Shown here piece after piece: positions 1 to 28,989 of a stretch of 64,000 bases of DNA. The notes under the pieces were generated by a model. The model worked only from the letters and a program-made list of their open reading frames with translations, did not search any database and had not been told where the DNA came from. The DNA is from Anthoceros angustus (taxonomy: Eukaryota; Plantae; Anthocerotophyta), in contig VJWM01000019.1 in assembly GCA_010909165.1 (NCBI GenBank), positions 868,001-932,000 on the forward strand, read 5' to 3'. Numbering within the stretch: position 1 is the first letter of the stretch; each line of letters starts with the position of its first letter. A program made the position numbers and the translations under genes.

Positions 1-1115
1 GTATATTCACCGCCTAAATATTATGCCAGTTGTAGGCTTATCTTGAGGTCTGGCTGGACAGGGAGTATGTAGCATGAGAACTGGAACCAGATTTGTGGAG
101 CGCAGGTTAGATTGCCTAGATCTGCGGCATGTTTGATAAACTTTTTTTTTTGGACTGAGCTCACTATGGTGGGTATATGTGGCAGGGGAGTGGTGGATTG
201 AGGTGGCAGGGACGTGTTGGGTACGGGTGGCAAGGGGTGGCAAGGGAGTGGTGGATTGAGGTGGCAGGGAAGTGGTAGGCAGAGGTGGCAGGGTATGCAG
301 TTGGGTTTAGGTGGTCCTTGGTTCATTGTATTTCTAATCGCTGGTTCTTGATGGCTTTCATGGAACTCCCGAGGGAACCGCTGGATATGCACGGTGGTGG
401 AGTATCGAAGATCACCTTGTAGGATCACACGATCACAGCAGCCTGACACCTACAACCGGATCCGTGGAGGTGCGAGCTGCGACCGAGGGATCAAGCTTTA
501 GGGTTGTGCTCGGTTCTTTGGCTCGCTGTGGCAGGTACAAAGTTGGAGTCTAACAAATAGCTATGCTTTTGTTTAGGTGGTGCATGTAGCGTATGGCTTA
601 TTACCATCACCGCCAAATGGAGCCAAGGGCTAAGTAAACGTCGACAAAGAAGAACGCCAGCCTGTGCCCAGTACATAAGTCAAGCATCTTCTAGTGAAGC
701 TGGTGTTCAAGAGTTGTCGGGAAGGAGACTAACAAGGAAACTTGGTATTCCTCAAGTGCAGAGGTCAAACGAGGGGACCCATGCAGCACGAGAGGAAGGT
801 GGAGCAGAAGAGGATGCCACTACTGTGCAAGAAACTCAGGTGCCCAAACTTTAACCGTCTGCATGAAGTTTAGAGAGCGCGTAGCTATGGGTCATTGCTT
901 CGGTGTTAAGGAATGCTTGACGTCAGCAAGGTGATGTGGCTCGCAAATTAGGTCATCGCTTTCTAGAGCTTACAAGTGGATACACAGCAGAATGTCGTCA
1001 AGACATTATGGAGAAGTTTAGTAACCTACCATTGCTGAAGATGTTTTGACCAAGAGCTCGACAGGATGCCAAAGACAGCCAATTGGGAGCATTGTTGTTG
1101 AAGAATGTGCGTGAG

Positions 1116-4100
1116 TGTGGCGCGACTTTCGCTGACGGCCAGCCGGGCGCGCACAATTCCGTGTCGTTGTAGTAAGGAGTCCGTTCCCAAGAGAATGATA
1201 AGCTCCGCTGCTTCACCGATTCTCACCTTACTTTCCCGCTCAACTTTAACACACGCAATCGCTGCTTTGCGCCTAACTACTCATAACGCTCACCGAACAG
1301 CCCGTGTGGCCAAACGCTTAAGGACCCGCTTGTCAGATCGCTCACGCACGCCACTCTCCCTTTAGTCCGCTCTCATCACCTCACTACGCCATCAACCTTG
1401 GAAAAGAACGCAAGTGGCTACGCCCCGACCTCCTCCGTTGCTCAACCGGCCTCCGTCCGGCTCAGACGCCTCCCGAGTTCCTCCGCTCACACGCCCGGCC
1501 CGCTGACGCCGCCTGACGAACACGGGTCCCCGCCGCCTTCCCCGCACACACCACCACACGTTAGGGTCCGCTACTGTGACCTTGACGCCTCTCCGAGCTG
1601 CCGGCTCGCCATGACTCAGACTCACGTTAGCATGAAGACACACAAGGTCTGCAAGAAACGCGATCAACACCAAGAGAAGATGATTTATTCAGCCCTCAGC
1701 CTCTTATACTACGCCCAAGTCGGCGCTTTATTACACTCCTATTCGAGGGTGGCTACCAAGACGCCCTAATCGGCCGCCTACCATCCTATTCCTCCTCCTA
1801 TCTCCTTCGCTTGGTGGGCCTGGAAGGTCCTCGCCTCTTGGTGGTCCAATCTCCGTCCCGATAGCTGCGACCCAATCGGATGATCCGCGAGGCGGGACCC
1901 TTCCTCTTCCCGAATCCCGTGTACACGGGCGGCCCTGACGACCGCCACACACAACGCTCCCCCGCCCCCGAGGTCCCTCCTGTGAGGGGCCACCGACCGA
2001 TCGCCTCCCGTAAGCCTGAGGGGACTCCTCCGCTCGAGTCCGGACTCGAGGTCCGGCCTCGACTCCCGAGTCCGAACTGGAGTCTCTTTCCCGAGTCCGG
2101 CCTCACGGGTCCGGTCTCATCTCGGGGTTCTGACCTCGTGGTCCGATCTTATTACACGGGTCCGTCCCCAAGCTCCGACTTTATCTCGCGGGACCACCCA
2201 TCGCTAGGCCCTCATCTACCCACCCACCCTTGTCTTGGGTCGGGTTGATTTTCTCCTTCCGCGCCTTTCTGTGGCCCCCATCTCTATCCTCCCGGACAGT
2301 GTGGACTTACCCCGAGGTCCGCTGTATTGGCTGCCCCGCCTCCTCCCGAGGCTCTTCTCCTCACGCTGCCTCCAAACAGGCCACTAGGGTCCCTGCGCCC
2401 CATGTCCTTCATCCCTTCCTCGAGCCTTCCGGGTCCGCCCGCTGTAGCGCGGCGCCGAGAGGCTTCCAATGCCTTAAGGAGCTCGTAGTAGGCAAAATCC
2501 GAGTCAATTTGGATTGCCTCTTCCACATGTGCCCGAGCACCCGATACCTTTCGCCATTGGTGCTCCGGAGCCGAGCGGGTCCGCTTTGGCTGGACCATCT
2601 CGCCAGTTTGATACCGAGCCGGCCGACCTCGAGGCCACAAGGGACGCCACCTCCTGCAACCGCCGCTGCCCGCCCAGCCCCGCTGCTTCCGCCTCCGCCA
2701 TGCCATAACGCAGCCCCTTCCGCCTTCCTTAATCGACCAGTTTTTTCAAGGCCCCAAGGTTTCGCCTCCCCTGCTCATCCCGGCCTTTAGCTCCATCTCC
2801 TCTAGACGGCCGCAACTCGCCTGATCATGGCTTCCCTGTGTCCTTCTCCATTTCGACGCCCCGCCTGCTCCATCGCCTTACCTCCTCCGTCCGCCAATGT
2901 AGCCGGAGCCGCTTATCTCGCTCGTGATCCGTGATCACGCCCGCAGACATTCCCCGCCTAATGGTAACTTGAGCCGCAGCCTGTGGTCTCTTGCGTCTTC
3001 CATCTCCGCCATTGCTCCACCTCACGAATCGAGTCCCGAGATCCTCCATCTCCTTGTCGCGGCTTCCTTCTCGCATGGCCCGCACTGCCCGCCGCCTCCG
3101 CCTGCCTTCAGTTAGCCGCAGCTATCCCCGCCTCCTCCACCGGCTTCGATCACGCCGATAGTGATCGCGGCCTGCCTTAGCCGCCTCCCTGCCGCTTCAC
3201 TGGGCGTCCACCGCCTCACCCAGTCGCGAGCCTTCTTCGCCGGCCTCCTCCGCCTCCTTCGCTACCCTCTCCGCAGAGGTCTTCACCGCTGGCCTCCTCA
3301 GGCTCGCTCACCGCCACCCACTGAAGAATTTAGTCCGTCCGCCGAATGGACCAGATTTCGGCCTCCCGCTTCCTTCTTCGATGCGGCCGAGAGCTTCGCC
3401 TCCGCCTCCCCGGGCCCCCAATTGCTCCCCGGAGGAGCACCATGCGCCTCCTGGCTTCCACCGGGGTCTTCTACGTCCCCAGAGACCCTAGCATACCGCC
3501 ATAGCTGACCCGCCGTGTCTCTTCCACGGCCGCCATTGGTGAGGCCCCCAAAAGTCCGAGGGAGCGGCATCTCACGGTCCGCCAAGGACCTCCATACCGC
3601 AGCCGAGTAAGTCCGGCCGGGTTCTCCTGACCTAATCAGTCCCTTAGGTCCCGATTGCCGAGGTCCCGAGCTCACCTCCTTGGCCCTCTTGGCCGCCAAA
3701 TTTTATTCGCCTCTTCGTCCCGGGGCCCTGAGGTGAGGGGTTCGAGCCGACCCTTGCCTCCCGGCCGGGCATGTGACCGGCCGGGTTGTTGCCTGACCTC
3801 CGCCTCCTGAGCGCCTCTTCGCCTTCTCACCGCCTTCGCCTCTTTACCTGGGTGGGCAGGCATGCACGAGTGGCCGGCGGGCACTCCGCCTTTTGCCCGC
3901 GAGTCTGCCGGGCTCATCGGCCGCTGGGGCCGGTGGTCAGCCGAGCCGGGCCGCCTGCCGCAGACTGCCCGGGGCACCAAGAGGAGGGAAGGGATATCTT
4001 CCCACACTTCCCTAGGTGGTGAGGGGTCCGCCTGCACGTATGGAGTCCGATCCTCCCGCCTCCTCCCGACTGCTTGGCCCTAGGGGTCGGGCCTCTACCC

Positions 4101-5352
4101 TGCGCCTTGCCCGCCTCTCGTAGGGCCGCCAACCCTTCCGAGCGCCCGCCTCTTCCCCATCCTTCAGAGGTCGAATGTCCCCACACATGGATCGTATGGG
4201 ATAGTCCCGACGGAGGTGGCTCGCCTCACCAGGGCCTCGCCGAACCTCAAGATGATCCTTCCCCTTCTCGCTTGCAGCAGCATGCTGAACACTAAATTAT
4301 CACCAAGGTGATCCACCTTGGTGAGCAAGTTCCAGTGGACAATGATCCGGCCACGCCTCACCTCCCCGTCCAAGCAGTCCGACATCAACCACCGCTGGTT
4401 GTCCGCCGCTCCGGCTTCAAAGACGCCGCCGCCTATCTTTCCCCTCGCCTTGAGGGGCCGGACTACGCCCAATCTCCTCCGCGGCCAGAAGCCGCCTCAG
4501 ACCTCCAAGGTCCACCTCGATCCTCCCGAGGTTCTTGGATCGAACCTCCTTGTTGGTCACCGCTAACATCTTCCCGAACTCCTGACTAGGTGACATCACA
4601 AATGTCCAGATGAACACGCCTAGGTGCCACTCTTCGACCAATCCTCCGCCTCCTCCATCCAAAGTCCGGATAGCGCATAATGTTGCGCTTACTGTGTTCC
4701 ATGGCTCATACCGCAGCCTTTTGGGTCCCATCGCCTTTCTCCTTTCTCTCAGAGCGATTGTCCGAGATCGCCGCACGATGCGCCTCACGCTGTCACGCCC
4801 AACCCCAACGGTGAGCCGCTGCCAAGATGCCCGAGGCTCGGAGAGATAGCGCCAGAGTGGGTTGCGAGCGCAAGAGACGCGAGAATTGTCTCGAGGTCGC
4901 AGAGAAATGACCTCCTCGCCACCGCACTGCTGGGAGTAATCCATGAGGGTGCCCTTCCTCGTCCAGAATCGCCGAGGTCTGCATGGCTTACTCGCCTTAC
5001 GCCACGCCGCCCAGCTGCCGCAGCCGCTGGGCGTGAATACCGCTATAACCGGGCTACGGCCTGCCGCATGCCCGACCTCCATGTGGCCGCCACGCGCCCA
5101 CCGCCTTCACGACTCAACTTCTAAATTACGCGATTTATCCTGCTTTGACCCGGAGTGGGGTCCGGACTTATCCGATACCCCGCGCACCAGTAGCTCGTCA
5201 GTGGTACCGGGGTCCACACCACTCCGAGTCCGAGTACTCCGAGTACCCCGAGTCCCGTGCTTATTCCTCCTTTTCCCTTTATTTTACTTTCTGACCTACG
5301 AAAAACAAAACCCCAACTTATTTCCTAACCCCAAGGGAAGTCCGAGTCTACA
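1116..5352 (-). mobile_element. 4.2-kb TG..CA element with 5-bp TSD (giant solo-LTR-like), copy 1
   Basis: GTGAG at 1111-1115 and 5353-5357. Termini TGTGGCGCGACTTTC...GAAGTCCGAGTCTACA. Homologous end to end, inverted, to 32527-44963. Confidence 0.9.
1798..4731 (-). pseudogene. Frameshifted ~950-codon ORF of unknown function (globular N-terminus, coiled-coil middle, basic C-terminus) inside element copy 1
   Basis: Starts MGPKRLRYEPW. Peptide blocks shared with copy 2: WLMSD.LD...IVHWN.LTKVDHLGDNL, PREVWE.I..LLLVP, VWRSL.DREMP, RAHVEEAI, SRIIRL. Confidence 0.7.
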
Positions 5353-8300
5353 GTGAGGCTTGTACAAGTTTAAAGGATGTTCAAGTTGGTGACAAATTGC
5401 GGGCAAGGAACACCTTGTTCAACATTATCTTATCGAGGATATCCAAGGAAAGGGTCCGGTTTCGAGCCTTTCTCGGCACATAGGAGTGAGCAGGAGGCGA
5501 TCCATCAAGCTTTGAGCACCGTGCGTGGAGGATATGTTTCGTGCCGAGAACATGGTGTGGGCCGGAAGGAAAGCAAGGTCCGACATCCTTCCGCCTATGT
5601 GAAAGCAAGCATCGCCCGCTTTTGGGAATCGCGGCCCTTCACAAACACAAAGATACCAAGCGCCGCGACAGCCTAAAACCTTCATCACCCACATCACGCA
5701 CTTTCTTGACATGTCGCAAGCACGCTTTTGGGTCATGGTCTTGTGCCTTTGTGTGATGCACAAATCCATGTTATTGCCGGTTGCCTTTTACATGCCGCTT
5801 GGGCATCTCCTTGTCGAGTGTGTGTGAATGCCTAGTGTACATGTTGATTGTAACCTTAGTTGGCCATCCGCTTGGGGACATGATGTAAAAATTTGGTGCC
5901 GCACCGGTTCATTTGAGGTGTAGCATTGCATGTACCAAGTCGTAATAGAGGCTCGCCTGCAAAGTGGGTTTGTAAGCTTTTGACTCATTTCACCGTGTGT
6001 AATGCTTAGTGTAGATGTTGCTCCCGAACTTCAATTAGGCATCCGCTTGGGGCCTTGTGGGCAAATTGTGGCACCGGTGTTCAAGTTCATCCGAGGTGTG
6101 GCGGATCGCATGTGTGTCGGTGAATTCTACTTGCGCTTTTGTGAGGAACACCCAACATTCAAGTAGGGCACGAGCTTTGAGAAGTTGAAGCCATTTTTGT
6201 GAAGAGCTGCAGGAGCGTAATCTTTGTTGTTGCTTGGTATCATGTGGAGATGGCCTTTTGAAGGATGCGTTGAATGGCCTCCGTGGACTCTCTCTCGTGT
6301 CCATCCCCGTGGTCTTTGCCATTGTTCTTGTGAGGTCATGCTTTGCCAGTACATCTCCCATTGTTTGTAATGCTCCTCCACATGTGTGGCTGGTGAGGCT
6401 GCTTTGTCAAAGTGCTCTTTGTGCGAAGGCTGATGCAGATTGGCATGCTCGCATGTCCGCAAGGCACTTGTGTCCTATGTGGGGTGAATAAGCTTAAGTT
6501 CATCTGGAGACTTCTATAAATGTTCACCTAATGCTCTTCTAAAATGGAGATGCTTCCAATACCAAGTTGTGGGCAAGGATGTGGATGGGCGGATAAGAAA
6601 CGGATCAAACTTGTCTTCATGGAGACACATCCAGAATTTGTTGAGTTCTTCAAGGGCAAGTTGAAGGATTTCATTCTCCATGACTTTGTTCAACGATGGC
6701 GGAGTTCCATGCATTGCAGAGTGGTTTCCATCGATGTGGTTGTTGTCTGGCTATGGATTTTCTCGAATTACGCATTTGGAGTCCAAGATGAAATCCACCA
6801 TGCATTGGCGTAATGACCGTGTTTCCATCCTCGCTCGTTTTCACAGCGCAATGGCCCCTAGATGCCGACAACCCCGCGCAAACATTCGAAATACTACCAC
6901 TTCTACATCGCTGACGACCTTGTGCATGACACGCTCTTCGCTCAACACTGCTTGATGAAGCATTGGTGGATGTTGGATCTGTGGTTCCCAAGACCTCGGG
7001 AGCATTGGTCGATGGAGCAGCAAGTCAATTCAAGGCATGTCGACCTTCATACTTCATCTCCGGTACCCTAGCTTGACAGTGGCGCAACATCGTGGTCATA
7101 CTTTGGGAGTGGCCATGGCAAGGGAGCATGATGGTGCGGTGCTATTTTGAAGAGAGCCCTTAGAGTCAGCAGAGTCCTCTCCCACGGCGGAGGTTGCAAA
7201 ATGCACGATGTTGTCCAAGACTGCAAGAACACATTTCTGCCGCGCAGAAGCTCTTATGCATCCGGGCAGCATGGAGTGCATAGAAGTTTCGCTTATTGGC
7301 AAGGATGAGGTGAATCGGAGGGTGAAATATGCTTGTGACCCCATACCCGGGTCCAAGAAGATGCATAGCTGTATGGGGCTAGTGTGGCGATCCTGCAACG
7401 AAAATGCGCAGCTGCCTTGTTTTGTGCAGTGTATGGAAAGCAACCATGATGCTCAGAGAGTTCCTCACGCTTTTGGAATTTAGTTAAGATTAGACCACAT
7501 GCCGATGGTCCCGCCTCGGATTACCCGCACACCGGCACCTTTACTCCTGGACGCCTCCTTGTCACCGACGCCCCGATGATGAAGTGTGGATCTCGACGGC
7601 ACCTCTTGGAAGTCGGTGACAACTTCATGGTTTTTGCCAATAAAGAAGATGAGGGCCAAGAATTCTACCTTCAAGGTAATCGAGGTGAAGCACACGCTTA
7701 GCACAAGCCGATCACGCCTTGGAGCCGGTCACACATCGTCGGGTGTGGTGGTTGGTCGATTACATGTTGCGTAAGAATATTCTCGGTCTGCTATACCTTG
7801 CCTCTAGAGAACGCATGTTGTTCAACCAATGAGTTAGTCAAACTATGCAAGTTTGACATGGTCCACCATGAACAGGATGGTGACGAGTTGTTATACGTCC
7901 TATCATCGATGCTCAAGTAGTGGACTCCCTTGTGGAGGAGAGTAATCGTGATGATCGTTAGGGATCCTTAGGTTGTTTTGATGTGGAGTAAAGTCGTTGT
8001 TTTGGTGTGGAGTGTGCAAGTACCGTTGGCGGACGGAGATTGTTGGCATGTCATTCCGCTTATCGTTGTTTCCTTGATCCATGAAGATAGCTTGTTTTGT
8101 ATCCAATGATGATCCAATAATGCATGGTGCGGTATAAATTGAGATGCTGGTCGTGGGCACACGGTCATTTTCCAGCTCAGAGATATTGATGCTTTATAGA
8201 GCGGTGTAAGTTGTGTCCTTGAACCATGTAGATAATTTCCAACAATGAAATGCATCCGCAAGATGTGCCTGGTTTTTGCTCTTCACAGAGGTGCTCGCCA

Positions 8301-8465
8301 TTTGGCACATCAAAGTTTGAGGAGTGGAAACATGGTTCATCTTGAATTCAACTTCCTTGACCATACACGTGTGGTGGGGATGGAGGCATGTCAGCAAGGG
8401 TTGAACAAGAAGCGCCCTGCAGACAAGTATGGACGTGGCTTTATATAGAGTGGTATGTTCCCTTC

Positions 8466-9005
8466 AAGTTGGTTACATGTGCACTTGTACAGTTGTTCAC
8501 TTTTCTTGCCATGTGATCCTCGCATGTTCCCATGGTTACATGGGCACTTGTGCATGGCTCACTCTTCTTGCCTTGTGGTCCTGGCATGTTCCCGTTGTTA
8601 CATGGGCACTTGTATATGGCTCACTCTTGTTGCCTTGTGGTCCTAGCATGTTCCCATGGTTACATGGGCACTTGTACAATGGTTCACTTTTCCTGCCATG
8701 TGGTCGTGATATGTTCCCGTGGTTATATGGGCACTTATATGGGTGTGGCATGGTGTACTTTGCTATGTGGTCGTGGCATGGTGTACTTGTCTTGCCATGT
8801 GGTTACGGTCCCGTGGTTACATGGGCACTTGTGCATTGGTGTACTTGTGTGGTTACGGTCCGTGGTTACATGGGCACTTGTATATTGGTACTTGTCTTGC
8901 CATGTGGTTACGGTCCGTGGTTACATGGGCACTTGTATATTGGTGTACTTGTCTTGCCATGTGGTTACGGTCCCGTGGTTACATGGGCACTTGTATATTG
9001 CCATG
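8466..9005 (+). repeat. Minisatellite array with core GGTTACATGGGCACTTG (~55-62 bp units)
   Basis: About 9-10 visible copies of (C)ATGGGCACTTG with variable spacers. Produces spurious ORFs in all three + frames. Confidence 0.95.
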
Positions 9006-9187
9006 TGTGATCCGAGCTTGTTTTTCATGTTGCATTACATGGCTACTTCAACACTTGTTCGCATCATGTGTTTTGTGCGGTTGGGCACTTCACCACCGCA
9101 GTGTGTGGTAGCTTTCGTTTAGGGCTTTGCTTAAAGTCCATGCTTTGGCGTCCGTGACTATACCTTTTGTTTTGTAGGGCGCGTACG

Positions 9188-10050
9188 ATGGCTCATCCAT
9201 CACGGCAGGCACTCATCCGGCCATCACTCATCCTGACGGCTTTTAGAAGCCACATTGCCTCCACATGGCTTCGACAGCGGCTCTTTCGGCTCCGGAACCC
9301 ATCCTCCGCTCTGGACGGTCCTGCTGGTTCTTCGTGGTTTGGGAGTGCTTCACCTCCACCGTTAACTCTATAGACCACTTCTCCCACAATCCCTTCATCG
9401 TCAGGGATTGAGACCGGCATGATGCTTTCCGCTTTTCACTATCTTTGTTTGAATTGGAAGGGATATGGTGGATCCGCTAAGGTTTCAAAGAGGTCAGAGG
9501 GTGTGGTGATTCCACTCCCTGGGATGTCTCGAGTATATCCTTTGGACTGACACACCCCGCCCTCTATTGGGAGTTGGGCTTTCTTGTTGATCGAATTGTA
9601 ATGAAGAAGCGTTATCCTTGCCGCGGAACCGGGGATGGCGCAGATCCGAAGGATGCGGTGGAAGTGGGTGCCTAAGTCACCGCTCCAGCCGCAATGAGGA
9701 AATTTCAGTTCGAGCACGAGATCCAATGCATACCGAGGTCGGACGAGTTCAAGGGATGTATGAGTTTGAGGCAAGAATTCGCCATTGGTGCAGCTTTTGC
9801 ATTTACCCGAGCATCGACATTGTTGTCGGCGACCCGGAGGCTGGTGACATGGTCCGAGTCCCTCACGAGTAAGAGATTGGTTGTCCACATGCTAAGGGCA
9901 TTGTAATGTGACTAATCGGTTTGAGAAATTGAAGCAGGAGGCCCAGTGGTGGCAAAGTTTACTACAAGATGTGGTTCCAGTGCAAGTGATTTCGTTGAAG
10001 ACGAACTTCTTTCGGCTGGGAAGTTGGATTGAGAGGTGGCCAAGCCAGGC
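9188..10050 (+). pseudogene. Possible accessory ORF of the Sola element, unknown product
   Basis: ATG (MAHPSRQ) just after the array, followed by coding-like ORF fragments at 9167-9373 and 9694-9906. No recognisable domain. Confidence 0.3.
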
Positions 10051-10179
10051 TTAATGTCTAGATGTGAGCATCAGCACACCAGCCTGATTGGCATGTGAAG
10101 CAATTCTAGGTAGGCGGCTAGAATCGTTTCTAGGCTTCGACATTTTCGGACATAACGCTCTTGTGTGGGCTGCATACAA

Positions 10180-10230
10180 GGTTGTAGGTTGAAGTCCGTT
10201 GTAGGTTGTAGGTTGTAGGTTGTAGGTTGA
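10180..10230 (+). repeat. (GGTTGTA)n short tandem repeat
   Basis: About 6 copies directly visible. Confidence 0.9.
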
Positions 10231-11677
10231 AGTCTCAAAAACTTTCAGCTTCCAAACAGAGAGCTTGTTTACTTTGAAAGCTCCATACAAGTCTGCTTCT
10301 AGGTTTTGCATATGTGAATGTGCTCGAGGTGAAGGCATGTGTGTGAAAGCTTCCCGAGTAGTGGATGTGAAGCCGCTTGAGGGTTCGGTTCTAGCCTCTG
10401 CATAAAACCGACTTGCATCACACATCAAACATCATACAAAAGCATTTGAGCATCACAATCAAAGTAGACTTGGGCAATAGAAATCTTATTAGATACATGT
10501 CCGTAGTTTTCTCACCTTTCGACATCATGCCCATTCGAGGCAAACTTTACAATGCCCAAGGCCTCACTCACAAATTCAAAATCCATCCCACGAGCCATCT
10601 AGGCTTGCTTCCACGGGCATGATTCAATGAGAAGTAATCATCTCACCCTTTCAATGGTGGCCTTATGCACACGCTGGCCTTCGCCGCAACTTAAAGCCCG
10701 CGGTCTACCCTCGGTTCCACTTTATCGAGCACGAGCACCCTCGCACCACGGGTCCCGCCTTTGCACTCAATGGAAGCTATGGCGCCTTGCAGAATGGATG
10801 ATATTGTTGTGATGGAGGGACATGGAATCTCCAAGCCGAGCACGAACGCCAAGGGCGCCCTCTTTGCGCGGAGGTGAGTATCACCATCTAGCTATGATGA
10901 TTCACGCTTTTCAACTTGGTCAGTAAAGATTTGCATCGAATGGAACGGGCCAAGGCACGGCAGCAGAAGAAGGTGCGAGCTCTGGTTGGCCCCTATGCCA
11001 GCCTCTCCGCCGCACGTGGTGCGATGGACCGGAGGACAAGGTGCTCATGGATGACTCAAGCGAGCACGACACCGGCGTGGTAGACCGAGGCGCCTCGAGC
11101 GGAGCAACGGCCATCGTGCTTGCATATAGCATGTATGGTCGAGGCATGTCGGCAAGAGGGATGTGTGGCACACCGCTCGCTCATGGGTGTGCTATGCTTG
11201 GCGAGGCGGATGTATTCGGACTCTTCACAAATGGTCATTTTAACTGTTGTGCTTTTCATGCTTGGACAAAGACCGCCCGAGATGTGCACTTGTTTTTAGG
11301 CTGGCCTTGTGTAGCTAGCCATTCTTTTGAGGCAATGTAGCTCGTGTAGCTATGCGAGGCACACCGATTAACACCTGTAGGTGTTAATCGACAAATCCAA
11401 ATGCACATCTAGACAAGCAAGGCAAGTGTGAAGGGTCACAAGCGCACAACATTCCAATTGCCAATCAACACACCGAACTCACACACACAACATAGTTTGA
11501 ATCCATGTCACAACATCCGAGAGCTGGCATGTTTAACATGGTTCACCAAACTAAAACCATATCTCGTAGAAAATCGGAGGCATCCACAGCTAAATTGCCC
11601 ATTGTAGATGCTTCCACACCAGGTTGGGACTCCACACTCTCTGACAAGTCGTGGATAGCTTTGCTGCAATCCCTCTC

Positions 11678-14330
11678 CTAGTTCGCCACAGCTTGATCCA
11701 ACCATGCTCTATATCCAGCAGAAAGCCAGTACAGCTGTGGAGTCTTCTTGTTCTTCTCGTTGGCCTTCGGAATAGCTACCATTGGAAACTTTGTGGTCAG
11801 CACAGTGTCTGCTTCAAGCATTATTGGGTCACCACGTGGCCCTGAATCTAGCAGCTCAAACGCACTTTTGTCAGACGGCACTTGCTCATAGTAATAACCT
11901 TTCACCACTTTTTCACCCGTAAAATCTCACCACCCAAGCGGTCTTCGCCGCTAATGTCGTGAGTGCCTCTGCATTTCGGCATACCACTTGACCTTCTCCT
12001 TATTATCCTTCATTGCACGCACCATGAAATTGTCTCCGGATGCGTGACGGCACCAAATTCCACGGTGGTGCTTCCACCAAGGCACCTTGTCGCTTTCTTG
12101 GGACGCCCGTCTCCCGGTCTTGGAGGCACTCTTCGTTTCAATGTGCCCGAGTCCGATCCGGCTTGCCTCTTGGTTTGGAGAGCGACGTCCACGAAGCTTC
12201 ACCACATCGGAGCGATGTTTCAAGTTGTGGTGCTTTCCGTCTACCAGTAATAGCTTTCGGTGAATTCAATTCCTTAACCTGCTCTGTGGGCACTTCCTTA
12301 CCCAGTGCAGTAGCCATTTCGTCGGTGGCCTGGCTCATAGTGGTCAGTGCACCACCAGGAAAAGTGGCCACTGCGTCACCAGCACAAGTTGCCACTTCAA
12401 CGGTGGCCTGACCCATAGTGGCCACTACACCACCACTGCAAGTGGCCACTACATCACCAACACAAGTGGCCACTGCATCACTTGCACAAGTGGTCACTTC
12501 CTTACCACTCAGTGGGGCCACTTCCTCATCGTCCTTGGTGGTGGCCACCTCCTTCTCTGCTACCAATCCCCTCTCTAAGAGCATCTCCACATCTTTGGGC
12601 AATTCATCCTCACCGGCACTTGACTTCATCTTTGGGCACTTCATCCTTTCATCTTCATCCATCAGCCTACATTCTTCCCTTCTGTCTCCATTGAGGTGGA
12701 CAAAGACGGCAAAAATCTACGGCGAGTATCACCGCATAACTGGGTTTCGATGACAACCAAAGTTTCATCCTCTTGCACAACCTGAGTCTCCGTAAAAAGA
12801 ATTTGGGTATCCTCCTCCACTGCCTGATTGTCCACTCCCTGAGATGCATCTTTGCCAGGCTGGACATCAACAGCCACACATGTGTGCCCACCATGTCTTG
12901 CCTGGTGAGGCATTATTGGCACACAAGCAGATTGACCCGTCTCACTCACTGGAACTTGAACACTGGGGCCAACAAACAAAGAGGTTGCCACGTTCGAGGC
13001 ACCCCCATTCATCGAAGGGGCCAACCCCAAACATGACACTGCTGGGCTGCCCGGAGAGTGGGAAAAATATCGCATCACACTACACCTGTAGGTGCCACTC
13101 GGACTCAAACCACAGGTTTGAGTCCGAGGCACCACCACCTCCAGTATCTGGACATAGTTGTGCATCGCCAACAAGGACGTCTTGGATTAGCCTGCAGACC
13201 GGTATGGGAGGCCCACGAGGTGGTGTGATGAACACTGAGCACCTCCAAGGGGCGGCAGCCATCAGTATGTGCCTATGACCAAACAAAATCCAAGTTAGCA
13301 CAAATGTCTTGTGAAAGTTGTCCCAAATCATGAAGCCAACTTACACAATTACTAACCAGGAGACTCCCAAACTGCCTTCTTCTGTGAGGCAACAGGGGCA
13401 CTATCTTGTGCGACTCCCCAAAGCAATTCTTCCAAACGGTGCTCCATAATGTGGAAGTCTCGCAGGCAACCATGGTAATGCTCTGTCCACTCTCTCTCCC
13501 GATCACGCTCCCATGCCCGGGGGCTGATTTGTGAATGGCCAACCCTTAGCCTTGAGCCACTTTGGAACCGGAAGACAACAAGCAGGATTGGGGCAAGTCA
13601 CCGTGACCAACATGTGTTGGTAGAGGCATGCATCGTGAAAACAGTGCCCACAGGGGAGGAAAACGAACTCATAGCATCCAACCCCCGCAAATCACCATGG
13701 AACCAATAGTCGTTAGAGGCATGGACACAAATTGAAACAAGAGCCAAGGCATGCAAATAGCAGGAGGACAACCTGGTGCACACGCAGCACTTTGTGATAT
13801 GAAGGGGCACATTTTGGCTGGTGTAACAAGGAGCTGGAATCCACTGAGGAGTCCTTTTTCCCTTCAGCGTCAAACTATGTATGCGGCCGAAGGCATCATG
13901 TAAGTCCTCCGCCAAATTAACCCTTCGTTGAAGGGTGTCACGCTCCTTGTTGTTGGCTGTGAGATTGTCCGCCTGCCTCAGATAAGACGATGTTGCCTCT
14001 CGAACATGGGCAACATGTGCATCCTCTTCCGCAGAGAATACTCCAAAGATTTGTTCGGTTTGAAAAGAATATAAAGTTGAAGTCTGCTGGAAAGATCCAT
14101 ACCTTCTTGTCATAGATTATTGCGCCAAGAGCGTGCGTGTGAGCTCACCAAGAGCAATTTTTGCTGCCACTAGATTGCTTGTCTCCTCGCTTGCAATCTG
14201 TGACAAGCGGTTCTCTTCCTTCGACAAGGAGATAAGCTCCTCAACCAGCTGAGTCTTTATGTGCGTGTGCAGCTCGAGAGTATCCCAGCCTACGCACAAG
14301 AGGGTGGGATGCACATTGTAAAATAGGAGA
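11678..14330 (-). CDS. Spliced/frameshifted accessory gene of unknown function with acidic low-complexity repeats and a C-terminal domain resembling the transposase C-terminus
   Basis: ORF pieces 14117-14330 (coiled-coil-like), 13860-14113, 12662-13174, 12138-12662 (8-aa VATCxGDV repeats), 11951-12060 (GDNFMVRAMKDNKEKVKWY) and 11678-11908 (VKGYYYEQ...QLYWLS). Exon borders not resolved. Confidence 0.5.
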
Positions 14331-14475
14331 GATGAACTTCCAAAAATGGTTGTACAGCTCATGTTATTCGCCACCAAGGCATGCTGCCCATGAAAAAGTG
14401 CACACCTGCCCTCCTTGCCCACACGACAAAATGACAACCTAAGAAAATGCTCACATGTCCACAACGTAAGAACAT

Positions 14476-14735
14476 GAGGAATGACGAATGCCCAACTGCC
14501 TGACATGGAATGACGAAATGCCCAACTGCCCGACATTAGGAATGACGAATGCCCAATCGACATTAGGAATGATTTAAATGCCCAACCGCCCATGATGGAA
14601 TGACGAAATGCCCAATCGCCTATTATGGAATGACGAAATGCCCAATCGCCACATTATGGAATGACGAAATGCCCAACCGCCGACATGGGAATGAAATGCC
14701 CAATCGCCCGACATGGGAATGAAATGCCCAATTGC
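14476..14735 (-). repeat. Minisatellite array, unit GGAATGACGAAATGCCCAA(N10-11), ~30 bp
   Basis: About 9 copies of AATGCCCAA visible. Confidence 0.95.
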
Positions 14736-15209
14736 CCGCGTGGATCGATGAACTAGGCACCCCATGCCAAGATGCCCACCGACAGACACATACTGACCGC
14801 AGCAAGACAAAATGACGTAATGACCAAACAACACGGATGTCAATATGCCCATTGCACCTTGCCAATGTGCACTGATGGAATGCCCAAGTGCCCCCATGAA
14901 GTATCCCTCCCAACAGAGCCTAAAGCATGTTTGAACCTGAATCAACAGGTTGGGAAAACAAATGCACAGAGCAAAGAATTAGCATGCTACCAACTTGGAA
15001 ACACCCACACCATGTAGAGTGATGAGCTTACAAAACCAGAAAGCTTGCCAAGACTGATACTTTTGTACAATCAATAATCAGCCAACATAAAGTCGCGCAA
15101 ATAAAGAAATAATCGATTTTGTACAAAATCGTAAATAATATTGTTCTAGATCTAGATGTACTTGTGAGTAAGTATGAATAACTTCAGAGTCGTTGTGACT
15201 ATAGAATCT

Positions 15210-15560
15210 AGTTTGCACCATAACATATACTTCTTTATGTTGCATATATTTTATGTTTTCTTGAAAGCCCAAGCTTACACCATATCATATACTTCTTTAC
15301 GTTGCATGTCTTTAATGTTTTCTTGAAAGCCTTGAGGTCACATGTGGTAGATGAGCATCGAACCGAGGAGTTTGCACCATAACATATACTTCTTTATGTT
15401 GCATGTATTTTATGTTTTCTTGAAAGCCCCAAGTGTACAAGTAGTAGATGAGCATCGAACCGGGGAGTTTGCACCATAACATATATTTCTTTATGTTGCA
15501 TGTACTTTATGTTTTCTTGAAAGCCCCAAGCGTACAAGTAGTAGATGAGCATAGAACTGG
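15210..15560. repeat. Tandem repeat of ~97 bp (GTTTGCACCATAACATATACTTCTTTATGTTGCAT...GAAAGCCC)
   Basis: Copies begin near 15210, 15275 (partial), 15370 and 15467. Confidence 0.9.
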
Positions 15561-16489
15561 GGAGTAGCTCAGTGGTGTATGATCATGAGGATAACCCATA
15601 CTCTTCCGGTGCCGACCTCTAAGCCCCATACATGCTGTCCTTTTGTCCTCTTGGACTGCCATGAAGGGAATCCCAAAGCACCCAAGATACTATTGTTAGA
15701 TGGTTTCTGAGCCAAGTGCCTACTAAGCTTTTACTTCTAGTCCTTACTTTGGGTTCGTGTGTGCGTGAAACTCCTCTAAAAACTTGTCCCGTCATACTAA
15801 CAACAACGAACAATGAATGCGGTACCCCTCAAACTATACCGGACCTGGTATAGCTTACTGGGTTCATTTTTAGGTACACCCAAAGTTGTTGGGCTACCCT
15901 GCATCTTATAACTGGTGCCACATCATACCGTGGGGGTTGATATTGGGTTCTTCGTAACGGTGCCCTGGCGTGGCTTTGTGGGAAACTACATGTGGCGGTA
16001 AACTTTGAAGCGGACATGATGGGAGTCACTTTTTAAGATGCCCCGACATAACATTCGAATGTGAAACGACCTTCATTTGGGTTTTACGCTAAGGGCTGAC
16101 CATACACGCAAACCCACCCTCACTGCCCTAGACCTGTATGCTATGCTACCCCTCGTTTTGGGATGAAGCTAAGAGACGTGCGGCCGCCACTTCCATGGCT
16201 TGGTGAACCATGCCTCCAGCCTCTCTCCTCTCACTCTTTTTCCTCCACGTATGCCACTCTCCTCATTTTGATGTAAACCCTGTTCACATGGTCAATACAT
16301 GTAAAGCATCTTGTGAATGTGAGTGTCACGACAGCTAGTTAGACCGTGAATAGAAAAAGCATAGTCTCGATGTGTCGAGCACCTGATCAATGCCAGATAG
16401 GCACCCGGACGAGATGGCGGATATTGTAATCCGACATATGAAAGGTGGCATTCAATTTGGAACATGCATTCAAACGCTTGGGGGAATGT

Positions 16490-16680
16490 CGTGCCATCGC
16501 TGCCTAGTGTCGAAAGCCAGCATCTGGTTGTCATTGCATAAAAACTATTCATGCAAAACAATGAATGCCATCAGTCTAGCTGCTGCTCGCTACCACTCCT
16601 TGCTACATTTGTCAGCTGCATTCGCACATCCTTCCCCCTTCACATCACACTACAATTCACACATTCACATCACACTGAAG
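16490..16680 (+). repeat. Dispersed direct repeat, copy 1 (copy 2 at ~20325-20510)
   Basis: TGCCATCGCTGCCTAGTGTCGAAAGCCAGCATCTGG...CTAGCTGCTGCTCGCTA...CACATCC matches the 20325 region. Confidence 0.85.
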
Positions 16681-17276
16681 AAACAAACCAGCTACTAGTT
16701 GTTGTCTGTCCATCTTTATTGGTGCATTCTGACAGCTTCATTGTTGTGTTCTACTGCTGTCACAAACACACAAACTGATTACAATGCCACCATTCCCCCC
16801 TGCTGGTTGATGCTTCTCTAGCATTTCGTGTTTGGAAGTAACCCCGTTAGGGTTAACTTCATTTAAACGTAGTAGCTGTTAGGTTAAGTATGTTAAGTTC
16901 AGTTATTGTCAAAGGTTATGACTCTTGGAGAGTTTTTTGTATATAAACACTTTTGCTGTTATTAAATCATTATCATTTTGAGTACATCGTGTGTATAACA
17001 CTCCGATGTTTTACATGGTATCAGAGCCACCAGGCTTTAATCTGCTATCCTACTCTCTATTTGTAAATGCATCAATCTAATACTGAAGATATACGTAGCA
17101 AAAATAGATCATAGACACAAAACCCAATGACCATAATTCATGGTCCCTGGTTCGTGTGTCTAAGATTGTGTTTTGCTACCTACATGACAATATTAGTGAT
17201 AGGCTATTTACATTTAGCAGAAAAATCATGAAACTTTTCAGTGCAACCGCTTGTAAAAGAGCGATACTCAAGGAAA

Positions 17277-18042: not shown

Positions 18043-19490
18043 AATGGCGACTGGAGGTGGTGCAGGAGGAGGTGGTGGTGGAGGGGAGGAGGCGGGGTGG
18101 TGGTGGAGGGAGGAGGCGGGGCGGGGGTGGTGCAGGTGGAGGGGGAGGTGGAGTAGTCCCTCCATTCCCACCTGTCCCTGTAATACCACAACCTTCCTAC
18201 TCTGTTGAATTTAAAGAGCGGGACAGGTTTAATGGCATGAAATTTGAAGGTTGGAAGGTGCGCATGACAGCTGCCCTGCAAGCGCGACACGTTTGGGGAG
18301 TTGTCACAGGCACGCTTCAGGAACCAGCACAATCTGCCACACAGGAGGAAAAGGACAAGTGGGCGAACCTGAATTACGTCGACGCCGCCTTAATCGGGCC
18401 GGATTTAATCTCGCCGATGTAGCTTTTCTCCACAAAGCCGAAGAGATCTGGACTCTTCTCATACAGACATATGAGGCTAAGAATATCCTTACCATGTGTG
18501 CTGTTCGGGGTGAATTATTCTCCTTGCGCCTCAAGGAAGGCGAAAAGGTGTCTCCTTTTGTCATTCGTTTCAGACAACTGCGAGCCCACCTCATCAACCT
18601 TGGTTCACAGTTTCCTGAGCTTGATGCTGTTAGCCAGCTGCTGACAAGCCTGCCCCCTAGCTACCAGACTTTCGTTTCAAGCTATGGTGCTACTGTCCGA
18701 GCTGCCGATGCTGCTCGAGCTGCAGGACAACCAACCAACATCAATCTTGCCGACGTCATAGGAGCCTTGCTACAGGAGGAACAAAGCAGGCTCACATTTA
18801 CTCACCATGGCGGCCGAACAAAGACTGACAAAGTTCTGTTCACCAGAAGCAAGCCTGATAAACCTCGTTCTTCCCATGGAGCGTTCCAACTCCGATCAAA
18901 CTGACCGAGCTCGAATCGTGTGGCATCCAGGGCCACTGGGAACGCGAATGTAGAAAAAAGAAAGCCGGTGAGGCACGCAAAGCTGAGAAGCCCTCTCGAC
19001 AGGCTGAAGCCCATGTTGCTGCCACCAAGGACCGACCAACTTCGTCGACACCTAACAAGCAACCTGTAGTAATGACAGTTTGTTTTGCTTCGTCTGCATT
19101 TCCTTCCCCACACACATGGTACCTGGACTCCGGGGCCACGTCCCACATTTGCAATGATAAGTCCATGTTTCACCATTATAGAGAGTCTACTACCACTAAC
19201 AAAGTTTTGTTGGGTGATGAAGTAACTCGTACAGGTCTGAGCATCCAAGGACACGGTACCTGCGTGTTTTGCTTGAATGATGGCTCCCTCGCATTTAGAG
19301 AACGCACATGTCCCTCATATGGCCAAAAACCTGATCTCTGTAAGTCAATTGATGTCTCTTCATTTGTACGACCTCTTGTTCACTTCGTCTAGCTGTCAGC
19401 TTACAAAGCGAGGGGGAGATAAGAAGGTCGTAGCAAATGGCACCTTAGTGCATGACTTGTATCAGTTAAATCTGACTTGTATCTGTTGGC
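18043..19490 (+). pseudogene. Copia gag (poly-Gly N-terminus, UBN2-type), zinc knuckle and aspartic protease, frameshifted
   Basis: FNGMKFEGWKVRMTAAL, LLTSLPPSYQTFV, CGIQGHWEREC (~18918), WYLDSGATSHIC (~19117), HVPHMAKNLISVSQL. Confidence 0.9.
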
Positions 19491-20759
19491 TGACCTCATC
19501 ACCGCGAAGGAGATCAGTAGCCGACACTCCCAGTTTGCGATCTGCCAATGTTGATCCGTCGCGAACTCTTTCCAGGCATGGCGGTGGGGGCCTGCTCGTT
19601 CAGCTCCGCCTCGCCCCTTTCTTCTCTGTTTCCTGGCTACCTCACAGCGATGCTGGTACAGTAGATACATCGCTATGGCGAAGGCGAGACCGAGACATGT
19701 GAGTTCCCGCCATCGCTCAGGCCCGACACGCATCTTACTCCCGTTCGGGCGTGTTTGGAAGTAACCCCATTAGGGTTAACTTCATTTAAACGTAGTAGCT
19801 GTTAGGTTAAGTATGTTAAGTTCAGTTATTGTCAAAGGTTATGACTCTTGGAGAGTTTTTTGTATATAAACACTTTTGCTGTTATTAAATCATTATCATT
19901 TTGAGTACATCGTGTGTATAACACTCCGATGTTTTACATTTCGGCACTGTTCATGCATACTCACGGGGCTTGCTTGCAAGCATTGCAAAACCAGGTCCCC
20001 TGTGGCACTTCTTTGAGCGGAGGCTACAGACAAAAAAAATGATATCCTTTGTTGTACTTGTTACAAAGCAATATAGCATCCTTGTCCTATGGCCTGTCAC
20101 AAATTTCACATGGTAAGTCTTCTGGAGTCCACAAGCTAGGTTCAATTTCGGATCGAAGTCCAGCAGATGACATGGTGCTATCTGCATCCATCCCGACCTT
20201 TAAGTTCCACCACTCCGCTCTCCTTGACTTCCACCACCATCTACCTAAGGATTGGTCTACATAGGCCCAGGCCATAGCTTTTCCATCACCGCTTGTTTTA
20301 CATTAGGTACTGTGGATGCTTGTCATGCCATCGTTGCCTAGTGTCAAAAGCCAGCATCTGGCTGTCATTGCATACCATATGTTCATGTTAAAAACAAAAA
20401 CTACAAGCAGGCTAGCTGCTGCTCGCTAACACTTCTTTCTGCATTTGTCAGCTGCAGTTGCACATCCTACCCCCTTCACACCACTCTGCAATTCAGACAT
20501 TCACACTAATAAATAGAGCAATGCATGACGATATGGTAGGGCATCGCCAACCCCTCAGTCTGCTTTCACCTTATGGCATAACTGCAGGTGTGAGCCACAC
20601 TTGCAATGGTAACATCAGTAATAAATCCGTCGATGTCCCTCACCTCGTCGATGACGTCCCTAGGGGCACCCCTAACAACGCCTTAGGAAACAACATCGCG
20701 GGGGTGTGTGACGGGAGGAGAAAGAGAGTAGTTAGAGGGGAGTCACCCGCCTAGGTTAG

Positions 20760-21010
20760 GAGCTGAGTAGATGTTGTGTGTGCTCTCTTCCTCTCAACAG
20801 CGTGCTAAGCTTCAAGCAGCCCGCCATCCTTCACAACTCGCAGGCCACCTCTTCGAGGTGCTGCTCTTAATTTACAACAGAGTACAATGCGTTGCTTGGC
20901 TACCGCATCTACACTCCACACAAAACCAAAGCTAGCTCTCTCATCCAAGTGCTCAGCCTCGCTAGATAAACTGACACTCGAAACTTCAAACCTAGCTCTT
21001 CATTGCATTG
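20760..21010 (-). repeat. LTR-like repeat fragment related to 44990-45260
   Basis: Reverse complement AGCAGCACCTCGAAGAGGTGGCCTGCGAGTTGTG...GGCGGGCTGCTTGAAGCTTAG matches AGCAGCACCTCCAGGAGGTGGTCTGCAAGTTGTC...GGCGGACTACTTGGAGCCTAG at ~45160. Confidence 0.7.
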
Positions 21011-21214
21011 ACAAAACCCTAACTTCAGTTTAATTAGGGCATTGCCCGTTTCTAATCGGGTTGTTCTTAGCACCACAAAGATGAGGATGCTCGACTCTAT
21101 CGACTCACATCCCCGTAGAAAAATAACCTTTCTTCCTCCCGCCCATGTTGTCCCATAGCTCCCATGAACACCATGGCCAAGTGAAGCGAGACCATGATCT
21201 TTGCTCGGTTTTTT

Positions 21215-21405
21215 TTGGCCTCGACCAATTCTACATTGATATTAAATATGCACCTTCCATTGTCCATTTATATCCTTGGTTAAAATATAGGGTGTATATA
21301 CATATATATGTAGATTTATGGAAGCTTAATTATTTGTATATTATGATAGAATACACAGGGCATACGTGTAGGAGTATACTACATACATGTACATGGCACA
21401 CATAT
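21215..21405 (+). repeat. AT-rich repeat fragment of the same family as the inner arms of the 60-62 kb inverted repeat
   Basis: GATATTAAATATGCACC...AAGCTTAATTAT...CAGGGCATAC...GAGTATA matches 61278-61432. Confidence 0.85.
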
Positions 21406-22544
21406 TAATGGTGGGGTGGGGGAGAGTGGTGGGAGACAAGGCTTCAAAGTTGCAGTTCCATATCCCAAAAGGCTACCATATTCGTTTAGTACAATGGCCA
21501 TGTAAACTTTGCAAATGTGAAACTCGAGCAATAAGCTCCACATACATAGAATCTAGAAAGAGAAGACAACATAGTTTGATGTTCTATTCTTCCATTCAAG
21601 TTGGACTATTACCAAGGGACGAGAGGAAGCAAATGACAGCCTTTCATCAATATTTACCTGGCATATATGCTGGCCTGAGGGCAATACACCCAACCGACAA
21701 CCTTTGCAGGAGTTCAACTTGTACGACACCATGATAGTCTTTGCAACTTAGAACAAGGATGATGGGCAAAGCCGCTGAATGCCAAAAGCATGCATTTAGA
21801 GGTTTAGAGGCATACATGTTCAACATAATCTAGCATATCCACAGCATAAGCTATAACCACTATATTGCCAACACGCCGCTCAAAAACCGGAACCTAGCAA
21901 ACTTTCGTCAAACTTCAGTCAAAGCCTCAGCATCTAATGATTTGATTCTTGTCTAAGTCTCTCAATTGTTTGTCTCATCTAGAACTCGCTATGCCATGGA
22001 GTGCCACAGATGCTCTAAGTCTTCCAATTGCTTGAAAGATAGATTTGAAAAACCCAGGCTTACACATCCAAATAAGCTTACCTCGAATACTAATGTGTGA
22101 CCCACAACTGGCGGAAGTCCATTAAACTAGCTTCGGAATCAATTGCTACCACATCTACCAATGGTGTCATTACTTCTCGAACATAGGTGTCTTTGATCTC
22201 CAGCACATGCTCAATCATGTCCTGCAAAGTAGCATAGCATCATACAAAAAAAAAAGGGTGGGCAGACAAGACGGGAGAAAATGAATCAAAGTGTTGAATC
22301 GAGCGAAGAGGGCTCTAACAGGGGAATCAGGAACCGGCGGATCCTCGCCATAACTTTGGAACGGGGCCGACACCAATTCTAACCAGCATTCTACCGCTGG
22401 ACCAGTTCCGTTCAGGGGCTCCAGGACCCGTGTGATAATCTACAGTCTCAGTTGTAGAGAGACCGAGTACTCGCTGCTGAGCACACAGATGTTGTGACGG
22501 GGTTTTCCATTGCATCCTCAGTGCATGGAAGACCCATCCTTAGT

Positions 22545-27800: not shown

Positions 27801-28989
27801 AACCTGGAAGATGCTCAAAGAGTGTTTGATGGACTTATCGAAAAAGATGTGGTCACATGGACTGCTATGATAGCAGGGTATTCCCAGCAGGGCATGGGCA
27901 AGGAAGCCCTTCGTCTCTACAATGCAATGCAGGAAAACAGCATCGCTGTACCTAATTCCGTGACATATATGTGCCTCCTGCAAGTATGTGCCAATCTGGC
28001 AGCTTTGCATCTGGGAAGGCAGCTACATGCACAGATTGACGAACACAGGCTTCAAGCTGACAGGGAGTTGCTGGCAGTTTGATAAATATGTATGGAAAGT
28101 GTGGGAGCATGGTGGATGCAGAGCAGGTGTTTGATGGATTGCAAGAAGGGATGTTGTTGCCTGGAATGCTCTGATTGCAGGCTACGCCTGTCAAGGAGAC
28201 AGTGAAGTGGTCTTTGACTTGGTCCAGAGAATGAAAGAGAATGGCATACAGCCAGTGAGCGTCACATTCCTTAGCATACTCTCGGTATGCAGTCAAGCGG
28301 GTCTAGTGAAAAAGGGACAAGAGTACTTTGAGGCTATGAGCAAACAGCACAGCATCAATCCTACATCTCGCCACCTCACCTGCATGGTGGATCTCCTGGG
28401 TCGTGCTGGACAGTTGGATGAGGCAATAGCTTTAGTGGACAATACTGTACTGCCTGATGCTGTAGTTTGGCATACTCTGTTGGGTGCTTGTCAAAAGTGG
28501 AGCAACGTGGAGGTGGGACTCCATGCTTTCCACGAAGCCTTGAAGTTAGATGGGAGAGATGCTGAAGCATATGTGTTGATGTCAAACATATACACTGGTG
28601 CCCAGATGTGGGAGGCACAGAAGATGCAGGGAGAAGACTGCAAGTCAGGGCATGGAAGCAGCCAGGTCAGAGCTGGTGGGCAGACAAGGACGGACAGGTG
28701 CACAGTTTTTGTTGGGGACGACAAGCATGATCACAGGCAGGCAAGGCTGCAGCAGGTTTTCTCCAAATTAATGAAACAGGGATGTATGCCAGACTCTGAC
28801 TCGTCACCGCCCATCATACCTGGTGACGGAAAGGAGGGGTTGAGTATCACCTACGTCCTAAACAACATGTCGGCGGGGATCCCCGGAGGCATTGTGAAAG
28901 ATCTGCGGGTTGTCGTTGATTTTCACACCGCCACGAAGTATACGTCCGTGGTCGAGAATTTGCAGGGATGCATTTCGGCAATCACTTAG
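24861..28989 (+). pseudogene. PLS-class PPR gene with E1/E2 and a degenerate DYW domain; lacks its 5' end and carries a 1.3-kb internal duplication
   Basis: Repeated P (VTWTALIAGYSQQG), L and S (SLVNMYAKCGSLEDA) motifs, CMVDLLGRAG, E domain, and tail IVKDLRVVVDFHTATKY. Segment 25629-26953 is repeated at 26954-28276. Confidence 0.9.

Follow-up and report, generated by a model that had tools for sequence, protein, structure and literature searches.

The stretch examined here, called the window throughout, comprises 64,000 nucleotides of Anthoceros angustus (Anthocerotophyta; assembly GCA_010909165.1, contig VJWM01000019.1, positions 868,001 to 932,000 of the forward strand); all coordinates are counted from its first letter. 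Its first 16 kb contain a decayed transposase gene of the Sola type, together with tandem arrays, reading-frame remnants and an unrelated repeat. A preliminary description of this DNA had taken the block from 600 to 16074 to be one Sola-type transposon of more than 11 kb with accessory genes of its own.

The transposase pseudogene (copy A) occupies 6192-7728 on the + strand. A profile hidden Markov model of 594 positions, built from 14 mostly full-length relatives, matched it at 6258-6485 and at 6451-7728, the latter with an independent E-value (i-E) of 2.6e-35, which is far beyond chance. In tblastn searches against the window, the relative P0004 found copy A at E 5e-23 and the alignment of P0001 begins at 6192; at the other end the reading frame may extend to about 7900. 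We regard the transposase identity of copy A as established. Pfam, which has no model for Sola transposases, gave no relevant match for 10 transposase pieces and 10 long open reading frames (ORFs) of the window, and a word search with a 93-aa transposase piece (6532-6810) gave no candidate. A full-library search with the same piece returned six weak matches, enough to reach the family. The pieces of the pseudogene were searched separately, and reading through stops as X was confined to local profile scans.

A six-frame reading of 5.4-8.4 kb places the Sola motifs all on the + strand, spread over frames, and the path along copy A crosses no fewer than eight in-frame stops and shifts frame at least seven times. 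The motifs DD.HD, WSDG..QFK and GHGK.E.DG named in the preliminary description are all present, albeit in a broken frame. ADDLVHD stands at 6910-6930 and DGAASQFK at 7011-7034 in another frame, with the W and S of WSDG lost. GHGK (7111-7122) and EHDGA (from 7124) lie in different frames again, so that GHGK.E.DG, although both its halves are there, reads across a frameshift. GDNFMV...FYL follows, up to 7671. Near 6760 a degraded DFAENY block now reads IFS-NY, and the first catalytic Asp has therefore been lost.

The Sola superfamily with its Sola2 group reportedly goes back to Bao et al. in 2009, the reference element being Sola2-1_HM from Hydra. Majorek et al. 2014 (PMC3985635, supplementary file 5) print the cores of Sola1-1_AP, Sola2-1_HM and Sola3-1_HM, place Sola in the RNase H-like superfamily and list Sola2 as clade E.12 with a sea-urchin protein among its members; PSI-BLAST links have joined Sola1, Sola2 and Sola3 in one superfamily (PMC4455052). 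The Sola2-1_HM core reads ..GDFAENYTF..QDEIQSYHW.., ..FISDDITHD.., ..FTDGCAGQYKN.., ..FFATSHG, that of Sola1 FDLEK.. / SDNCGGQNRN / ERGHTQS and that of Sola3 KDYCQKV.. / SDNASSY (PMC3985635). In the relatives of copy A the blocks DFAENY..Q.E.QS.HW / ISDD..HD / (T/S)DG...Q(F/Y)K / F..(S/G)HG stand in the order of Sola2-1_HM and are invariant across 24 relatives. The window copy has kept the later blocks; missing from it are the D that opens the first block and the S of SDG. The cores of Sola1 and Sola3 match neither the window nor the relatives. At motif level, this comparison of Sola2-1_HM and the sea-urchin protein with the window and its relatives, made by eye, supports the view that the window transposase is of the Sola type and closest to Sola2, as had been proposed from the motifs. 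An AlphaFold2 model of the relative P0018 (predicted local distance difference test score 78.9) gave weak matches throughout in a Foldseek search against the PDB, the best at E 0.0097; nearly all of them were RNase H-like (NurA, PFV integrase, EndoV, PIWI, IstA, RuvC, RNase HI). The modelled fold would fit the RNase H-like placement of Sola and adds no proof to it.

Three of the six weak full-library matches, or their cluster mates, come from the liverwort Riccia sorocarpa and are hypothetical proteins. With the Riccia protein as query, a further search led to relatives of 570-640 aa in metagenome assemblies and to a sea-cucumber protein (Holothuria, E 5e-15, 93% coverage). The samples behind the metagenome elements include ERZ26858887, ERZ1034369 and ERZ27227293. 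Twelve metagenome loci (L001, L006-L008, L011-L018) show one gene order as far as each contig reaches, namely UP(+), transposase(+), NIF(-), F7 or F5(-), RING(-) and COIL(-), and this order is conserved across families with only 45-55% transposase identity. UP, an ORF upstream of the transposase, contains a helix-turn-helix (HTH; Pfam HTH_29/HTH_11, E about 5e-5) and is probably the N-terminal exon of the transposase gene. The first gene of the opposite strand encodes a phosphatase of the NIF/FCP1 type, whose Pfam scores of 31.2 and 28.9 bits exceed the gathering score of 21.8. The remaining accessory families are F7/F5, without known identity, a small RING-like protein and a coiled-coil protein of about 240-320 aa. 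For no accessory family did hhalign indicate a common origin with the C-terminal domain of the transposase; the probabilities were at most 0.2%.

Comparison of copies gave these metagenome elements sharp ends: 24-bp terminal inverted repeats (TIRs) of the sequence GGT(A/G)AAAGCATGCGAGTGGAAACA, 8.9-10.3 kb apart, and between them two internal tandem arrays. In the three loci where both TIRs are present (L008, L011, L014) the flanks disagree and no target duplication is readable, which may reflect chimeric assembly of a multi-copy repeat. In L001 the NIF-phosphatase gene (5043-7325, -) has long N-terminal tandem peptide repeats, whose unit measures about 16 residues and is rich in Glu, Gln and His. 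Such a minisatellite within an accessory ORF recalls the 24-bp array in the window ORF 12141-12716 (-) described below.

In Riccia, about 8.8 kb are common to four copies and consist of UP, the transposase gene and a non-coding tail of 4 kb that contains arrays of 71 bp and 21 bp. Both the large size and the internal arrays are traits of the family. The accessory module is a property of the metagenome lineage and was not shown for Riccia. The evidence supports the conclusion that the clade to which the window transposase belongs is really large and multi-gene, with TIR-bounded elements of 8.9-10.3 kb and accessory genes on the minus strand.

Two further observations concern the Riccia loci. 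Five kb downstream of the Sola2-type transposase of L002 (CM100797.1) lies a gene for a 1079-aa Peptidase_C48 (ULP1-like) protein (18367-21805, -), which has a weak RING-profile match inside it (19969-20064, E 0.005) and is located outside the 8.8-kb block common to the four copies. In L003 (12375-17527, CM100800.1) the transposase gene is split by an insertion of about 5 kb between profile positions 334 and 339.

With the gene order of the relatives at hand, the surroundings of copy A can be read for traces of the same genes. Upstream, three stretches on the + strand match the UP profile and are collinear with it. The one closest to the transposase, 5675-5782 (segment 5603-5824), corresponds to the C-terminal part of UP (profile positions 238-269), has an E-value of 0.003 among the 34 segments just upstream of the transposase and is the best UP match window-wide. 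The next, an HTH-like stretch at 5459-5500 (segment 5393-5512; profile 162-175, E 0.16), falls where the Pfam HTH_29/HTH_11 match of the relatives lies in UP. The outermost, 936-1043 (segment 921-1046; profile 72-107 of 273), is the second-best match in the whole window with E 1.1 among 1973 stop-free segments, and has E 0.05 among the 93 + strand segments of 1-6300; as a trace of the UP/HTH part it is suggestive only.

Between the outermost trace and the other two lies a GC-rich repeat of about 3.9 kb (1113-5010, up to 64% GC, limits from pairwise alignments). It is unrelated to the Sola2-type element: it has collinear inverted homology to 44996-33062, and there is no transposase near that second copy. 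Because UP traces stand on both sides of it, the repeat is most simply explained as a nested insertion. We had considered the proposed start of the element near 600 simply wrong, since 1.1-5.0 kb belong to another repeat, and revised this after the HTH-part traces were found on both sides. A start in that region is not unreasonable given the trace at 936-1043, but no terminus was found there. The GC-rich repeat itself has no Pfam match. Its second copy (33062-44996) is stretched to 12 kb by insertions, among them Arg/Ala-rich simple sequence at 34.2-36.5 kb, and holds a 300-bp direct repeat (41130-41429 and 41960-42259, 100% identical, 830 bp apart).

Downstream of copy A, Pfam was run on the 106 stop-free stretches of at least 60 aa in 4.9-16.6 kb. 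The only relevant match among them was zf-RING_2 at 13506-13691 on the minus strand, with 21.2 bits and E 3.5e-4; this is below the gathering score, and the RING protein of the relatives scores 21.2 bits as well. The RING profile of the relatives ranks 13560-13664 (-) first of 1365 window segments (E 0.011; E 7.6e-4 among the 92 minus-strand segments downstream of the transposase). The spacing of Cys and His in this RING-H2-like zinc-finger remnant equals that of the relatives down to the last pair, an unusual C-x4-C with x3-(V/I)-P after it; two stops interrupt the first half of the finger, which lies just upstream. Next to the RING remnant on its distal side are coiled-coil-like ORF remnants (13817-14270, -, in the stop-free stretches 13601-14116 and 14120-14653), which stand in the position of the COIL gene of the relatives and show no sequence similarity to it. 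Two further candidates were dismissed: a NIF profile match at 12306-12566, which is low complexity, and an EDLHD..G match of accessory proteins, which is not collinear.

The tandem arrays of the block number five in Tandem Repeats Finder, not three as previously counted. They lie at 8470-9000 (62/55 bp, scores 362-386 and 334, repeat families D2-D4), 10179-10229 (7 bp, short), 12309-12498 (24/78 bp, families D5 and D7), 14478-14722 (30/61 bp, families D6 and D9) and 15210-15565 (97 bp, score 451, family D1). The first is open in all three + frames because its unit has no stops, and the third lies inside a 192-aa minus-strand stop-free stretch (12141-12716). LTR-like (long terminal repeat-like) direct repeats were sought in the block, and none were found.

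The ORF remnants reported for both strands were borne out for one of them. Between 9050 and 14470 the minus strand has four stop-free stretches of at least 150 aa against a mean of 0.30 in dinucleotide shuffles, and not one of 300 shuffles reached four; on the plus strand, long stop-free stretches are at chance level. Part of the minus-strand excess is due to arrays that have no stops in any frame. The chain of minus-strand ORFs from 14.7 to 11.7 kb ends in a transposase-like C-terminal domain (fragment B, 11753-12127; profile 449-575 of 594, i-E 5.6e-10), which was also matched by tblastn with P0012, P0015, P0017 and P0018. Such a chain could be a decayed host gene fused with a domesticated transposase domain and no mobile element at all, and the significant excess of long stop-free stretches ending in this domain would be in keeping with that. 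We consider it very improbable: the domain carries two in-frame stops, the tandem arrays supply much of the ORF length, and RING is the only Pfam family found.

Fragment B is not the inverted C-terminus of copy A, since both cover profile positions 449-519. The overlap on opposite strands raises another possibility, namely that two Sola2-type copies lie tail to tail, A (+) near full length and B (-) truncated or an internal-deletion derivative, each with its own flanks; internal-deletion derivatives and nested insertions are common among DNA transposons. However, sensitive blastn and tblastx of 5000-9999 against 10000-16999 found no similarity between the two tails, neither in DNA nor in translation, and there is no catalytic core upstream of B, nor any core or HTH part for it anywhere in the window. 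Moreover, under the canonical plan the RING remnant, which shares the strand of B and lies upstream of it, is on the wrong side for an accessory gene of B. This arrangement therefore seems unlikely to us.

The limits of the block are less clear than had been proposed. The sequence of the suggested right end, followed by ATTT at 16074, is there (16056-16074), but it has no inverted copy in the window with up to three mismatches, and the TIR of the relatives has no match in the window, so this end is not upheld. Nor is there an inverted match of more than 10 nt between 1-1112 and 14300-17000. Judged by the proportions of the relatives, a left end at or before the start of the window and a right end at about 15.5-16.5 kb would be possible but unproven. 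A G-rich 58/24-bp tandem array at 179-293, near the window start, could be a subterminal array if the element begins before 600.

How far do these features belong together? We interpret the block as the eroded carcass of one large multi-gene cut-and-paste transposon of the Sola2 clade, lying on the + strand, and hold this reading to have an even chance of being right. For the block as a single element with accessory genes of its own the balance stands equally level. In its favour, the HTH traces upstream of copy A are collinear, and the RING remnant and the coiled-coil ORF follow in the order and on the strand expected from relatives that are multi-gene and 8.9-10.3 kb long; to this extent the proposal of a single transposon exceeding 11 kb and bearing accessory genes has gained ground. 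The excess of long minus-strand stop-free stretches speaks for it as well. What matters here is how the UP and RING traces, each of them weak by itself, are placed together, and this is a judgement made post hoc.

A number of points weigh against this reading, and the picture of one clean element does not hold. The repeat at 1113-5010 lies within the block, the canonical plan leaves no room for fragment B, which has no counterpart in the relatives either, and neither TIR nor target-site duplication (TSD) was found in the window. The RING and UP matches are weak, and the RING profile would score any RING-H2 finger. The RING remnant lies 5.7 kb from the end of the transposase, compared with 2.8-3.7 kb in the relatives. 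The NIF, F7/F5 and COIL profiles found nothing real in the window, and of the accessory proteins searched by tblastn, tblastx and profiles RING alone came up. The 8.8-kb block shared in Riccia holds the transposase gene and a non-coding tail only. Finally, the minus-strand ORFs are longer than the transposase pieces and may therefore be younger or of other origin.

Several of these points are shared by the main rival, a mosaic of unrelated debris in which the Sola2 relic covers only about 5.4-7.9 kb. The content of 8-16 kb, downstream by coincidence, would then be made up of minisatellites, of fragment B as a truncated Sola2 insertion in its own right, and of the remains of a decayed minus-strand RING/coiled-coil gene or transposon. 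There are no termini to hold the block together, it shows no homology to the NIF, F7/F5 or COIL genes of the relatives, and its minus-strand ORFs are more intact than the transposase. Plant genomes abound in RING fingers, and the one in the window scores below the Pfam gathering score; the neighbourhood is a transposon graveyard, with the nested GC-rich repeat, a copia gag and a fragment of a Mutator-like element (MULE); and the block that the Riccia copies share holds a single gene. Yet the RING remnant is the sole RING-like segment in 64 kb, it is found on the expected strand and side with the C-x4-C spacing and with a coiled-coil ORF distal to it, and internal tandem arrays are a trait of the family. 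We regard such a mosaic as a serious possibility, albeit one that is probably not the true account.

If the block is indeed one transposon, the relatives suggest what its live ancestor would have looked like. Between 24-bp TIRs, one strand would carry the HTH part and an RNase H-like DD(D/E) transposase, and the opposite strand a convergent module of a NIF/FCP1-type phosphatase gene, a gene without known identity, a RING-like gene and a coiled-coil gene, with two arrays. The HTH part would bind the ends of the element, and the acidic residues of the DFAENY, SDD and GHGKGEHDG blocks would coordinate the metal ions that excision and integration require. The products of the accessory genes may act on host transcription or silencing. 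The window copy would then have retained traces of the HTH part, the transposase, the RING-like remnant, the coiled-coil ORF and several arrays. Mobile it no longer is: the first catalytic Asp is lost, at least eight stops and seven frameshifts disrupt the reading frame, the 5' part is interrupted by the foreign repeat of 3.9 kb, and 11753-12127 hold a stray piece, inverted, of another transposase copy. The window copy is a fossil, inert and unlikely to have any function.

The rest of the window contains genes and further mobile DNA, and its content is that of a land plant. An intact gene for a 1350-aa pentatricopeptide repeat (PPR) protein of the PLS class (46526-50578, -) forms, with 22545-28989, a cluster in which broken paralogues lie on both strands. 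In database searches the 1350-aa protein matched proteins of conifers, ferns, lycophytes and leafy liverworts at no more than 40-57% identity. A 300-bp PPR stretch (22555-22854) is 95% identical to 46539-46838, which points to recent local duplication and decay. A laccase-like gene is also present within the window. Close to the right side of the block, a copia-type gag ORF (18251-18901; Pfam Retrotran_gag_2, E 6e-16) has direct repeats of 190 bp on either side (16827-17016 and 19750-19939, 99.5% identical). Together they resemble an LTR element that is small or has lost internal sequence and that is young relative to the Sola2 relic. Another match, of 84%, between 16487-16669 and 20321-20505 is not collinear with it. 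The MULE/FAR1-type transposase fragment at 30530-31216 (+; Pfam ZSWIM1-3_RNaseH-like E 5e-7, MULE E 5e-4) is unrelated to the Sola2 relic. Near the end of the window, nested long inverted repeats span 60565-62411, one of 325 nt and 94% identity (61109-61433 and 61540-61864) and one of 282 nt and 90% (60565-60846 and 62130-62411). They are followed by an AT-rich tandem array of 133-139 bp (62647-63148), and the whole arrangement from 60565 to 63148 looks like a foldback element.

To our knowledge, Sola is among the least studied cut-and-paste superfamilies, and its elements have been described as single-gene. We could not find a published description of a Sola2 lineage that is bounded by TIRs and built of six modules, a phosphatase gene and a RING-like gene among them, and a full-text literature search returned nothing relevant linking the NIF phosphatase domain to DNA transposons. 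This lineage is more interesting than the window copy, the value of which is that it leads to the family and bears witness to an old invasion. In the relatives, an architecture of 9-10 kb with TIRs and six modules has been kept at 45-55% transposase identity, and its accessory set includes a RING-like protein and a phosphatase of the family of the RNA polymerase II C-terminal domain (CTD) phosphatases. Hence the relatives offer a concrete and testable case of a DNA transposon with candidate host-manipulation genes beyond those of MULE and CACTA elements. That the clade occurs in land plants is shown by Riccia sorocarpa and by the window. Tentatively, and with more doubt than confidence, we suggest a lineage of giant Sola2 transposons of 9-10 kb with a four-gene opposite-strand module, present in land plants and in at least one further eukaryote (the metagenome host), to which the window relic belongs and whose module might act on host transcription or silencing as the Sola counterpart of the VANDAL anti-silencing genes.

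Compared with Sola2 as represented by Sola2-1_HM, the clade described here has the same core blocks in the same order, a putatively RNase H-like core and, in the relatives, TIRs; a sea-urchin member on that side is paralleled by a sea-cucumber relative on ours. It differs in its size of 9-10 kb, its four conserved accessory genes and its internal arrays. The described Sola2 elements that we know of encode a transposase only. The published accounts consulted that mention Sola2 likewise treat the group as transposase-only. Sola elements are defined by a TSD of 4 bp; no such TSD was read here, and the window copy is a pseudogene without recognisable ends. Sola1 and Sola3 belong to the same superfamily and have a similar general arrangement of acidic residues, but their cores are unlike those of the window and the relatives.

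The likeness to VANDAL that had been drawn for the window concerns the layout. VANDAL and other multi-gene MULEs (VANA, VANB and VANC in Arabidopsis, the ULP1-carrying KI-MULEs) have family-specific extra genes beside the transposase, as do the relatives of copy A. These extra genes are thought to act on the host, and VANC is an anti-silencing factor. Beyond the layout the two differ: they are of different superfamilies, their accessory genes have no sequence relation, the transposase of the window has no MULE Pfam match, and the only MULE match in the window is the unrelated fragment at 30530-31216. PIF/Harbinger elements with their Myb-like ORF and CACTA elements with TnpA and TnpD also need or carry a second protein beside the transposase. 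Their proteins are unrelated to those found here, where the module of the relatives comprises four opposite-strand genes and includes a phosphatase of the NIF/FCP1 type.

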